Source: Pavona decussata (lineage: Eukaryota). From it: a stretch of 64,000 bases of DNA. How positions within the stretch are numbered: position 1 is the first letter of the stretch; every line of letters starts with the position of its first letter. Both the position numbers and the translations under genes were made by a program. The notes under the pieces are model-generated. The model was not told the origin of the DNA and searched no databases. It saw nothing but the letters and a program-made list of their open reading frames with translations. This document shows, piece after piece, positions 14,701 to 19,234 of this stretch. The stretch lies in assembly GCA_977016875.1 (NCBI GenBank), contig CDRNST010000258.1, positions 248,001-312,000 of the forward strand, written 5' to 3'.

Positions 14701-17700
14701 TATAGAAATTCAGACCACCATTGCAGCATTTCGAAATAAAAGTCTCTCGTGATTCACTTAAAAAAAATTATGCACTAAGGTTCACTTACTTGTCTGAATT
14801 GTTTGTTGCCCATAACTTAGAGACGAGTTTTCTGTAACAACAGCAACTCTGAACTTATAGAGTACTGGATAGTAGTTTCGACGACCAAAAAAAGTTATTC
14901 CAATGTAAAGGCAAAGTTGTCCCAGATTTATTGTATAATTTGGCGTAATAAAGACCTAGGAAAAAGGTTATAAAATAAGAAATAAAATGGGCATTGAAAT
15001 ATCAAAACAAATCAAAATGGCGAGAGAATAGAAGGAAACAAGATTAGTAAGTCAGTTGACAGCAAAAACAACAATAATGAAGTTTAACGAGCGTACCTCC
15101 GACAAATATGCAGATCTAAAGGTACTTTTGTCTTCCGAAAAAGCCATCTCTATCATGTATACAGGGGTGCCACTCGTGTTTTTGACAGGCTCCCATTCCA
15201 ATGAGATTGAAGTTAAAGTCGTGTTTGTCACTGTTGGTATGCCTGGAGTCGGAGAAATGGTGCCATCTCCAATCAAAATTGAAGTGAAGTTCTTTACTCG
15301 GGTCAAAAACTCGCAGCTCCTAAAGCAGCTGCTACTGTTTTTCTGTAAAAACAAACAAACAAACAAAGCAAAACAAGTGAATAATTGACCAAACAAATAA
15401 TTTTTATACGCGCTCCAAGGAATTTTTCTCGTAACATTTACTTACACAGTCTTGCTTGCATGCTCGTTCGTCAGCGAAAGACTTTCCACACGGAATTAAA
15501 CACTGTAAACGGTATAAAATCGAAATATGGAGTTAATTCGATTTTCAAAAGAAAACTGACTCCAAAACGAGGTCTGTCAATACAACTCACATCTTTGCAT
15601 GACAGCGATTTGCAAGGCTGTTGTAGTTTAGTTTCCACTGGATTCTGAAAGAAAAGCAGATACAGCTATTAACTTAACGCGCAATTGAGAAGTCTGCTTT
15701 TGATTACCCTAAACAACCAAAGTGGTTTGAATTTCACGTATTTGGTATTATTCTTGATTGATCCATTCATGCACGCATCCATTAATCCCTCAAAACCCAG
15801 TAGCTGTTGATAATTTCAGTACATAGAGAATGAAAGATACTCCGAGTATGTTCATAGTGTCAAAATATTTAGACAACAAATGACAAAAACTTAGTTGGAA
15901 ACAAGTTATATTTCAGTATGAAGTACATCATCATCAGACTAAGAATTTGCATTCATTCATTCATTCATTCACTGTTCGCTCGTTCGTCCATTCATCATTC
16001 CTTCACTGGTCGGTTACTGGTATTCGAACTTTTTTGAGGGGGAAGGATGACGTGTGGCAAACTGCTGACAAGATTTTAATGTACTTTTATTTGTGTCAGT
16101 GTTTACATACGAAAGGGCGAGTTTGCATAACTATCGCGTAGTTTCTAGTAAAAATAACCGGATCAGATAAACAAGTCTAAGGAAAAACATGAAGGGTAGT
16201 AACATTTAAAATATTTTAATTTTTATGCCTTGAAAACCTGACGAGATTCGAGATTTGGCCAGGTCGAATGGCGGTAACACCTCGCTACTAGTGATTTGCG
16301 GATATCAAAAAAAAACAAAACATTGCGAAAGAAAACCGAGAAGTATGGTGTCATTTGACATACTAATATCCAACTAATACAAAAACACATTTAGAAAACA
16401 AGAAAAGATTAAAAAGAATTGAAAAAATGAAAAACATTATACTGGCATAAAAATTTCCTGTCAGTTTAACACAAATTCAGGAACCAGCGTAAAACTCGAT
16501 CGCAGACTGTATATAGATGATTTAGATCCGAAGTATAATGTAACTGATGTGAGACAGGCTCGTTTAATTTGTAATTCTGATGCTCTAAATCTTCCCTTCC
16601 TCCTATCAAATAGAACGGAAAGTTTCATAGTACGGCAGGTGTACTATAATTTTGTCGAAACGTACAAGGCAAAGTGGCTGTCAGCATGTGCGTCATTTTT
16701 TCATTTCATTCTAGCTTTAATGTTAGTCTTTTCGTAAGATATGATCTTATGGCAGGAAACAAATCATTTGTGCGAGCATGTTTAAAGAGACAACACAGTA
16801 CTTAATTGATCACAACCTCACAACCTGATAGTCAAAAAAAGAAAAAACAAGAAAAGAAAAGAAAAGAAAAAAGATGATTCCATGGTTTATGCGGATCAAC
16901 ATCTCGGGATTTTTCAAAATTTTTCCCAATATCACTCATTTTGATGAATTTTAAAGTAATACTTGAGATATATGTTTTCCCAAATACTTCTTGAAATTAA
17001 AAACCGTGAACCTGCAGATACGGCAGACATCGAGAACATGCTCTCTCATCTTAATTATCTTTTCCTCGTTGAATAACGAGAGACATTACTGAATTGTATT
17101 CAAATTATAATTGGTTATACCAGTTATGTGTTGATAATTGAAAGCTTCTTTGTGAAAGAAAAAAAAAACACGATTGTGGGCTTTGCAAATGTCAAAGAGC
17201 GACAACTGCACTGTCGTGTTTTGTTGGCTTGAGATTTTTTTTTTCAGTGAAATCTTCGTTATAATTGAGAAGGTCACAAAAAATATTAGTATTAATTCTC
17301 CTTTATACGGCAAATGCTGTGTCTATGGAGACTCTGGCTGCGTGGGTAAAATTTTCCAACCAAGAGAGTTGCACGCATCACGTATTGTTTGTAGAAAATA
17401 CAAAAGGATTGAGTTTCCCTTCAAAGCCTCGATTAGCATTGAAATATATATTTCATTTCACCCGAATTAGGCAAATGTCATGAATTTCACAATTTTGTTA
17501 ATTCACAAATTTTCAGGTTTTACATATCCTGCCGTGAAATCTGGTTTTGAAACTTTTATTTTATAGAATGCGGCAGGTGCTGTTCTCGAACAAAAAAAGA
17601 CAATTTTTAATATCTTGTTATTATGCAAAGCAGTTTTATTTCTATCACCCGAGGGGCCAAAATTAAAGTTGCTACCTTCATTTTAAAGATATTTCCTACA

Positions 17701-19234: not shown

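Follow-up and report, generated by a model that had tools for sequence, protein, structure and literature searches.

We describe here a gene of the stony coral Pavona decussata, called gene A below, that is predicted from its reading frame and its homologues to be intact and to encode a type I receptor tyrosine kinase (RTK), the ectodomain of which carries a cysteine (Cys) box of the anosmin-1 and CATCH kind directly in front of a long array of FN3 modules. The stretch of DNA in which the gene was first noticed, referred to throughout as the window, consists of the 64,000 nucleotides (nt) at positions 248001-312000 of contig CDRNST010000258.1 (C258) of the 602-Mb assembly GCA_977016875.1, and is AT-rich, with a GC fraction of ~0.33-0.44. 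Gene A occupies the minus strand from window position 19234 to a point 14.3 kb left of the window, and guided splice refinement yields 37 exons over ~33.6 kb, with a coding sequence of 4749 nt for 1582 amino acids (aa) and 0 internal stops. In order, the product comprises a signal peptide, the Cys box, a 17-aa linker, eight FN3-like modules, a transmembrane helix, a split tyrosine kinase and an acidic tail. We assign a probability of about 0.8 to this account taken as a whole, i.e., a 37-exon RTK gene with a Cys box of the anosmin/CATCH kind, an FN3 stalk and a split kinase, in which the box serves as a recognition or regulatory cap; the architecture by itself we regard as very probable. The original prediction, a short note made from the letters of the window, was confined to positions 14790-19234, which are exactly exons 1-5 of gene A, and anticipated that the gene would run on beyond the window, as it does through 17 further exons.

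The exon junctions were refined with a local script, for which the guides were five full-length or near-full-length coral homologues and the Porites N-terminal fragment P0096. Twenty of the exons lie inside the window; they take in the box and FN3 modules 1-5 and reach into module 6, the first exon of which is the last of them. Exon 1 (19079..19234, on the minus strand like all those that follow) provides the start codon, a signal peptide with the hydrophobic core CKLLFLLWIFALY, and the first helix of the box (ARCYANC, Cys 1-2); it reads M...KARCYANCITE up to a GTAAGT donor, and its open reading frame (ORF) aligns from Met1 with Porites P0017 and P0096 and with Orbicella P0100. Exon 2 (15591..15644) encodes the 18 aa NPVETKLQQPCKSLSCKD, which hold a loop pair of cysteines (Cys 3-4), and is bounded by a TTTCAG acceptor and a GTGAGT donor in phase 0, the same layout being seen in P0017, P0111, P0109 and P0047. 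Exon 3 (15446..15502), which likewise sits in phase 0 between a TTTACAG acceptor and a GTAAGT donor, encodes the 19 aa CLIPCGKSFADERACKQDC of helices 2 and 3 with Cys 5-8, in which the Cys, L and P columns are invariant. Exon 4 (15097..15342) carries in one open frame of 82 aa the segment KNSSSCFRSCEFL with helix 4 (SCFRSCEFL, Cys 9-10), the 17-aa linker and the N-terminal half of the first FN3 module (FN3-1), and exon 5 (14790..14955) carries the C-terminal half of that module (...YKFRVAVVTENSSLSYGQQTIQTS), the FN3 fold of which was shown on residues 1-200 of the orthologue P0111. Introns 1-4 are all in phase 0 with canonical GT..AG borders and pyrimidine tracts, introns 2 and 3 being 88 and 103 nt long. 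When the gene A product is compared by blastp with the transcript-derived P0110, a single high-scoring segment pair joins residues 19-1578 to residues 1-1555 at 53% identity.

The mature N-terminus thus assembled contains ten cysteines, arranged as four C-x3-C pairs and one loop pair within a box of ~65 residues, and the spliced ARCYANC...SCFRSCEFL sequence, short linker and FN3 module that had been proposed for this region are all found in exons 1-5. The joined N-terminus of 171 aa aligns over its full length (1-171) with Porites P0017 and P0096 at 53-54% identity. Among ten homologues that are 30-68% identical, nine of the Cys columns are invariant and the tenth is nearly so, which argues that the Cys pattern is conserved and not a product of chance; the same ten also have in common A-R ahead of Cys 1, an L-x-P motif within helix 2 and F-L following the final Cys.

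In human anosmin-1 the corresponding region closes on a C-x3-C-E-F-L ending and is followed by a WAP domain and four FN3 domains. In gene A, a single open exon, exon 4, holds both the final Cys pair (CFRSCEFL) and the beginning of FN3-1, and a WAP domain between them is therefore impossible. The 51 matches to the WAP profile (PF00095) in the genome include none on contig C258, neither a WAP-core motif nor a Cys-dense open stretch is present on the gene strand over the ~34 kb of gene A, and no WAP follows the box in orthologous coral transcripts. The idea of a hidden WAP exon in gene A can be rejected on the grounds of the shared exon 4 and the lack of a WAP-core motif on the gene strand, and the claim of the original prediction that this domain is missing stands at the level of exon, contig, gene strand and coral transcript alike. 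A canonical anosmin gene was also looked for elsewhere in the genome: at 0 of the 30 WAP loci inspected (from the 51 PF00095 matches) did an exon of the C-x3-C-E-F-L type lie within ~1.5 kb. One candidate, at 1.527 Mb of contig C54, was rejected as a canonical anosmin since it belongs to a large matrix gene with WAP, Kazal, Kunitz, thyroglobulin and VWA domains. The region around it (C54:1514500-1546700; loci L052-L055) appears as a large multi-exon extracellular gene or gene cluster with WAP, Kazal and Kunitz exons, several thyroglobulin type-1 exons and VWA exons.

The stalk that follows the box consists of eight FN3-like modules, five of which are complete in the window while the first exon of the sixth lies at 244-54; FN3-like half-exons can be traced to window position 39. 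Module 2 is encoded by exons 6-10 (12261-12151, 11459-11365, 11012-10950, 10051-9991 and 9750-9706), which were placed by guided tblastn blocks and splice refinement, and is FN3-like with conserved additional cysteines (GCS...YPGC.N..FP...CY). Module 3 (exons 11-13; 8028-7820, 7356-7300 and 5849-5783) corresponds to P0110:335-445, where the Pfam fn3 profile passes its threshold (E 1.6e-08, 35 bits), and gives an fn3 hint at E 0.005 at the exon level. Module 4 (exons 14-16; 3435-3248, 2351-2295 and 2094-2028) is FN3-like through its cross-matches with modules 5-8, module 5 (exons 17-19; 1333-1146, 1034-978 and 493-427) is FN3-like with a weak Pfam fn3 match on its P0110 equivalent (E 0.004), and module 6 begins in exon 20 (54..244), for which fn3 passes the cut-off on P0110:650-755. 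Overall, fn3 matches on the orthologues pass the cut-off for modules 3 and 6, are weak for modules 5 and 7, and are lacking for modules 1, 2, 4 and 8; modules 4-8 cross-match one another, and module 1 is assigned as FN3 by AlphaFold2 and Foldseek on the orthologue. Pfam scans of single exons return nothing for the box and fn3 hints only. From module 3 to module 8 (window 54-8028 and leftwards to about -6800) the exons come as triplets of 188-230, 57 and 67-76 nt with repeating phases, a regularity which suggests that the stalk has grown by tandem duplication of three-exon units. WAP, YWTD and Ig domains are absent from the gene A ectodomain, and Pfam scans of P0110 and P0111 detect no YWTD/LDL-B repeats at E<=1.

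A run of N at 9060..9234 falls inside intron 10, between the exons at 9750-9706 and 8028-7820; that an exon has been lost in it was considered and rejected, since the flanking exons account for all of the homologue residues. A second N run in the window lies at 31833-31970. In intron 5 (window 13875-14709, minus strand) there are open frames of 79-141 aa (e.g., ...CTFCQTSRETLAHIFYLCSFSTDFW...) that recur at window -38830 to -39715 (locus L005), and these look like the C-terminal part of ORF2 of a retrotransposon without long terminal repeats, and would be a repeat family inserted in the intron.

The 40 kb to the left of the window contain, on the same strand and in order, more FN3-like exons, a transmembrane exon, kinase exons, one exon for the kinase insert and another, long one for the acidic tail. 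The 17 exons of gene A that lie there (C258:233665-247257, minus strand) complete module 6 and go on to encode modules 7 and 8, the transmembrane helix, the tyrosine kinase (in eight exons) and the tail. The transmembrane exon (IGGLIVGLIIAAVIFLALIVW) gives a helix at residues 1021-1043 of the product, and in the kinase exons GEGAFGKVYKG...VAVKML and HRDLAARN...DFG can be read directly, the motifs present being GEGAFG, VAVK, HRDLAARN, DFG and PLKWMSIE. The tyrosine-kinase profile PF07714 matches the orthologues at E 3e-90, and the match spans 371 residues as against the 258 positions of the profile, from which a kinase insert of ~110 aa follows. The complete P0111 kinase, compared with the PDB, finds RET as its best match (~1e-69), then FGFR1-3 (~1e-66 to 1e-64) and PDGFRA (~1e-64), the best 60 PDB kinase matches including no ROS1; single kinase exons likewise match RET best and then FGFR1-3 and PDGFRA, with FLT3, CSF1R and KIT leading for the N-lobe exon. 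By its motifs and nearest matches, then, the gene A kinase is classed as a split tyrosine kinase of the RET/FGFR/PDGFR-like type with all catalytic motifs. The suggestion in the original prediction that the box and FN3 array might be the ectodomain of a membrane receptor such as a tyrosine kinase, with the advice to look for the missing exons to the left, has proved well founded: the transmembrane exon and eight kinase exons were found there and join the box and FN3 exons in one open model of 1582 aa, with eight FN3-like modules where at least six had been foreseen.

Relatives of gene A are already present in public databases, solely as uncharacterized predictions. With the two exon-4 peptides as queries, HMMER found 95 matches at E<=0.001 in a full scan of 1.84 billion representatives, the informative ones being from Porites lutea, P. 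harrisoni, Acropora digitifera, Orbicella faveolata and Actinia tenebrosa, all annotated as "uncharacterized protein". When the Orbicella ectodomain was used in a word search, further relatives came up in Pocillopora verrucosa and Montipora capricornis, together with three full-length proteins carried on contigs of 4.3-6.0 kb. The anthozoan relatives (Orbicella XP_020627782, P. verrucosa P0109, A. digitifera XP_015758345, M. capricornis P0112 and P. lutea XP_073232009) have the same box layout, FN3 array, transmembrane helix, split kinase and tail and are 31-55% identical to gene A; they differ in the number of modules, with total lengths of 1215-1582 aa. The whole architecture is found in Orbicella XP_020627782 (P0100) and Pocillopora P0109, and in Logan/JGI contigs the box, FN3 array, transmembrane helix and kinase are encoded in one ORF in P0110 (1561 aa on 6040 nt), P0111 (1319 aa on 4419 nt) and P0113; a further contig of 3053 nt (P0106) spans the FN3-transmembrane-kinase part. 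The ORF of P0111, read directly from Logan contig SRR29622812_55453, is uninterrupted. Since 37 exons spread over ~33 kb cannot fit on contigs of 4.3-6.0 kb, these contigs must represent spliced RNA, and in other corals a single mRNA encodes everything from the box through the FN3 array and transmembrane helix to the kinase, the box being followed by no WAP domain. P0111 (locus L056, gene 161-4120) is the closest of the transcript orthologues; its called ORF starts MKAIVTKARC and has no signal peptide despite 160 nt of upstream sequence, perhaps because the 5' end was misassembled or frameshifted, or because another first exon is used.

Within the P. decussata genome, exon 4 has one paralogue, 62-63% identical, on the opposite strand of contig C258 and ~150 kb away. 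It belongs to paralogue B (C258:415900-454500, plus strand; loci L016-L020), which lies to the right of the window and keeps colinearity with gene A all the way from the ARC box through to the kinase tail, with an ARCTANC box, FN3 array, transmembrane helix, split kinase and tail, and 40-89% identity to gene A at the exon level. The apparent exon 2 of paralogue B (PAFRSLIYANEKKCKQIYRD) has Tyr at the position of the fourth Cys, leaving nine cysteines, and a weak donor (GTCAGC); either paralogue B no longer has the accessory loop disulfide, or its real exon 2 was overlooked. A different arrangement is found in the sea anemone relative Actinia tenebrosa LOC116297048 (P0047, 796 aa), in which the same box and FN3 array are followed by a C-terminal pair of chitin-binding peritrophin-A (CBM_14) domains and both transmembrane helix and kinase are lacking; it is a secreted, possibly matrix- or chitin-bound version of the ectodomain.

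The kinship of the box with known domains was approached through its predicted fold. An AlphaFold2 model was computed from an alignment of ten sequences with P0111:1-82 as its first row, so that the orthologue stands proxy for gene A, and shows four helices, each with one C-x3-C pair, at a predicted local distance difference test (pLDDT) value of 78.7 and a predicted template modelling (TM) score of 0.67. In a shape search of the ESM Atlas cluster representatives with this model, the top three entries are "anosmin-1-like" (TM score 0.77), "Anosmin-1" from Chordata (0.74) and "KAL-1" from Nematoda (0.78), all scored by the query and with 79-81 of the 82 residues aligned, and the next row reaches a TM score of only 0.51. 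In a Foldseek search of the PDB the highest TM scores are for Sevenless (0.60) and ROS1 (0.57), followed by 0.37, with no E-value being significant; scores against the various ROS1 and Sevenless structures range over 0.48-0.60, and in a fold search the ROS1-family CATCH ranges take ranks 1-2 among 48,161 chains. A two-domain model of box plus FN3-1 (P0111:1-200; pLDDT 77.6) has an FN3 fold after the linker (Foldseek E ~2e-05), and the only PDB chains that align over both domains are those of ROS1. Sequence comparison points faintly in the same direction: with Actinia P0047:24-200, phmmer ranks the ROS1 N-terminus first, in a colinear alignment at E 0.016. Published accounts of the CATCH domain give it four helices, or two helical hairpins stapled by disulfides (PMC11743138; PMC13044245). 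In our models, the coral box is predicted to be built as two doubly disulfide-stapled helical hairpins with an extra loop Cys pair, helix 1 being expected to pair with helix 2 and helix 3 with helix 4. In fold and Cys pattern, though not in sequence, it would thus appear to belong to one kind of domain with both the anosmin-1/KAL-1 cysteine-rich region and ROS1/Sevenless CATCH. Both the anosmin-type identity proposed for the box and the ROS1/Sevenless lead that accompanied it are therefore upheld by shape and, for anosmin, by Cys spacing, with no significant sequence match.

Several observations weigh against this account and have to be set beside those that carry it. The structural evidence comes from the box of orthologue P0111, which is 61% identical to the gene A N-terminus, and not from gene A's own protein, and the anosmin match compares predicted models on both sides. 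The sequence match to ROS1 reaches only E 0.016-0.07, the profile of the family box plus FN3-1 placing ROS1 at a non-significant E 0.055-0.068 among PDB sequences; the Cys-box profile alone retrieved from the same sequences no ROS1, its sole match being bikunin at E 9. Of two word searches, that with the Actinia box returned just the query and that with the family profile just family fragments, and neither found an anosmin; an Atlas feature search gave no usable match. Some family members (Orbicella P0100 and paralogue B) lack one of the two loop cysteines, and the loop pair is consequently not essential. Such results might be expected if the box merely converges on the anosmin/CATCH shape, given that stapled C-x3-C hairpins are simple and may arise repeatedly, in which case gene A would be another lineage-specific RTK of the FN3 type. 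The lack of a significant sequence match to anosmin or ROS1, and the reliance on predictions for both Atlas partners, are what this alternative would lead one to expect, but it leaves several coincidences to be accounted for. These include the occupation of the top three Atlas places by anosmin-1/KAL-1 with a wide gap to the next entry (0.74-0.78 as compared to 0.51), the first two ranks of the ROS1-family CATCH ranges among all chains searched, and the colinearity of the ROS1 N-terminal alignment. The loop Cys spacing and the C-x3-C-E-F-L ending also agree with the anosmin pattern given in the original prediction. Moreover, the box is in all three proteins the first domain past the signal peptide and N-terminal to FN3 repeats, abutting FN3-1 directly in ROS1 and the coral, with WAP intervening in anosmin. 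We accordingly consider convergence unlikely, and think that the box is probably a true homologue of the anosmin cysteine-rich region and of CATCH.

Two further alternatives concern the gene rather than the box. One holds that two adjacent genes, for a secreted anosmin-like Cys-box/FN3 protein and for a separate downstream kinase, have been wrongly joined here and by predictors in other corals. That a secreted relative lacking the transmembrane helix and kinase exists in Actinia tenebrosa lends it some color, as does the fact that the junctions of gene A rest on splice signals and homologues, and the inner ones at exons 8/9, 13/14 and 19/20 are less certain than the others, which also tells against our own model in its details. 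Yet the reading frame of the 37-exon model stays open from end to end and its junctions are canonical, the intron-free coral contigs P0110, P0111 and P0113 carry everything from box to kinase in one ORF, P0106 spans the passage from FN3 through the membrane to the kinase, and paralogue B keeps the same order, so that a false fusion seems to us scarcely credible. The other alternative makes gene A a divergent receptor of the ROS1/Sevenless family that has lost its YWTD propellers, and not a member of a separate family. It draws on the colinearity of the CATCH-like box and FN3-1 with ROS1, which is the sole PDB family to align over both domains. Against such a descent stand the absence of YWTD/LDL-B repeats from the scans of full-length orthologues, the RET/FGFR/PDGFR-like character of a kinase with an insert of ~110 aa and with ROS1 outside its best 60 PDB matches, and the better fit of the box to anosmin models (TM scores 0.74-0.78) than to ROS1/Sevenless structures (0.48-0.60), a comparison that is made across different libraries and programs. 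We judge it very unlikely, and retain the reading of gene A as a single RTK gene of its own family.

What the box does in such a receptor can be approached by analogy. The N-terminal region of anosmin-1 contacts RTK ectodomains and heparan sulfate. By comparison with anosmin-1 and with ROS1/Sevenless, the membrane-distal box and first FN3 modules of gene A could act as a ligand-recognition cap, an autoinhibitory cap or both for the FN3 stalk; the CATCH domain of ROS1/Sevenless clamps back onto downstream domains in a bent, autoinhibited form and swings out upon ligand binding (PMC11743138). An extracellular ligand or matrix partner might then engage the box and the first FN3 modules, release or reorient them and cluster the receptors, after which the split kinase would trans-phosphorylate sites that may include conserved tyrosines of the Tyr-x-Asn type in the insert (IYVNTP) and tail (EYYNVP). 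Once phosphorylated, these sites would recruit SH2 adaptors, and the conserved Y-x-N motifs of insert and tail are likely SH2-adaptor sites. A specific regulatory role for the box is a tentative proposal on our part, with the odds leaning somewhat against it.

The coral family is of interest as a second RTK family, independent of the first, to bear a head of the CATCH type, which is fused directly to FN3 as in ROS1 and set on a RET/FGFR-like kinase. It suggests that the cysteine-rich region of anosmin belongs to the same fold class as CATCH, it offers a natural experiment on the role of the domain in ligand capture as opposed to autoinhibition, and it adds to the evidence that the shuffling of ectodomains onto kinases of the FGFR/RET-like type has given corals many mosaic RTKs. 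The anosmin papers that we examined do not describe a function for the cysteine-rich region of anosmin-1, and in the searchable literature we found no paper linking that region to the CATCH domain or describing an RTK of this kind. A broader view is that the coral box, the CATCH domain of ROS1/Sevenless and the cysteine-rich region of anosmin-1 are all forms of one ancient homologous module, N-terminal to FN3 arrays and older than the split between cnidarians and bilaterians, with anosmin-1 as a soluble relative of an ancestral receptor ectodomain. On balance we doubt it. If true, it would provide a structural rationale for the poorly understood binding and tuning of RTKs by anosmin-1, and would predict that the coral box acts as a self-ligating, autoinhibitory or co-receptor cap.

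Compared with known systems, gene A shares parts with several and its plan with none. Members of the anosmin family are secreted and consist of a signal peptide, a region rich in cysteine, a WAP domain and 2-4 FnIII repeats, with a His-rich end or a glycosylphosphatidylinositol anchor (PMC3580776). The model of the coral box superposes on the anosmin-1/KAL-1 cluster models over nearly its whole length, whereas the gene A product lacks WAP, has eight FN3-like modules and adds a transmembrane helix and a tyrosine kinase; because it is a membrane kinase without WAP, gene A is not an anosmin orthologue, and what had been surmised to be a distinct anosmin-related architecture is now seen to be that of an RTK with an anosmin-type box by fold. 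In ROS1, nine FN3 domains are interspersed with three YWTD propellers and the kinase is of the ROS/ALK type, in contrast to the FN3-like modules alone and the RET/FGFR-type split kinase of gene A, and the ROS1 stretch aligned by phmmer has no counterpart of the extra loop Cys pair of the coral box; since the propellers are lacking and the kinase is of a different class, gene A is not a ROS1 orthologue either. RET, FGFR and PDGFR are the best matches for the kinase domain, with its HRDLAARN and DFG motifs and an insert as in the PDGFR/VEGFR class, but their ectodomains, which are cadherin-like or composed of Ig domains, are unrelated to the coral Cys box and FN3 array. Gene A is thus a mosaic RTK, in which an anosmin-/CATCH-type cap, a stalk of eight FN3-like modules and a RET/FGFR-like split kinase are combined in a new, as yet unnamed architecture.

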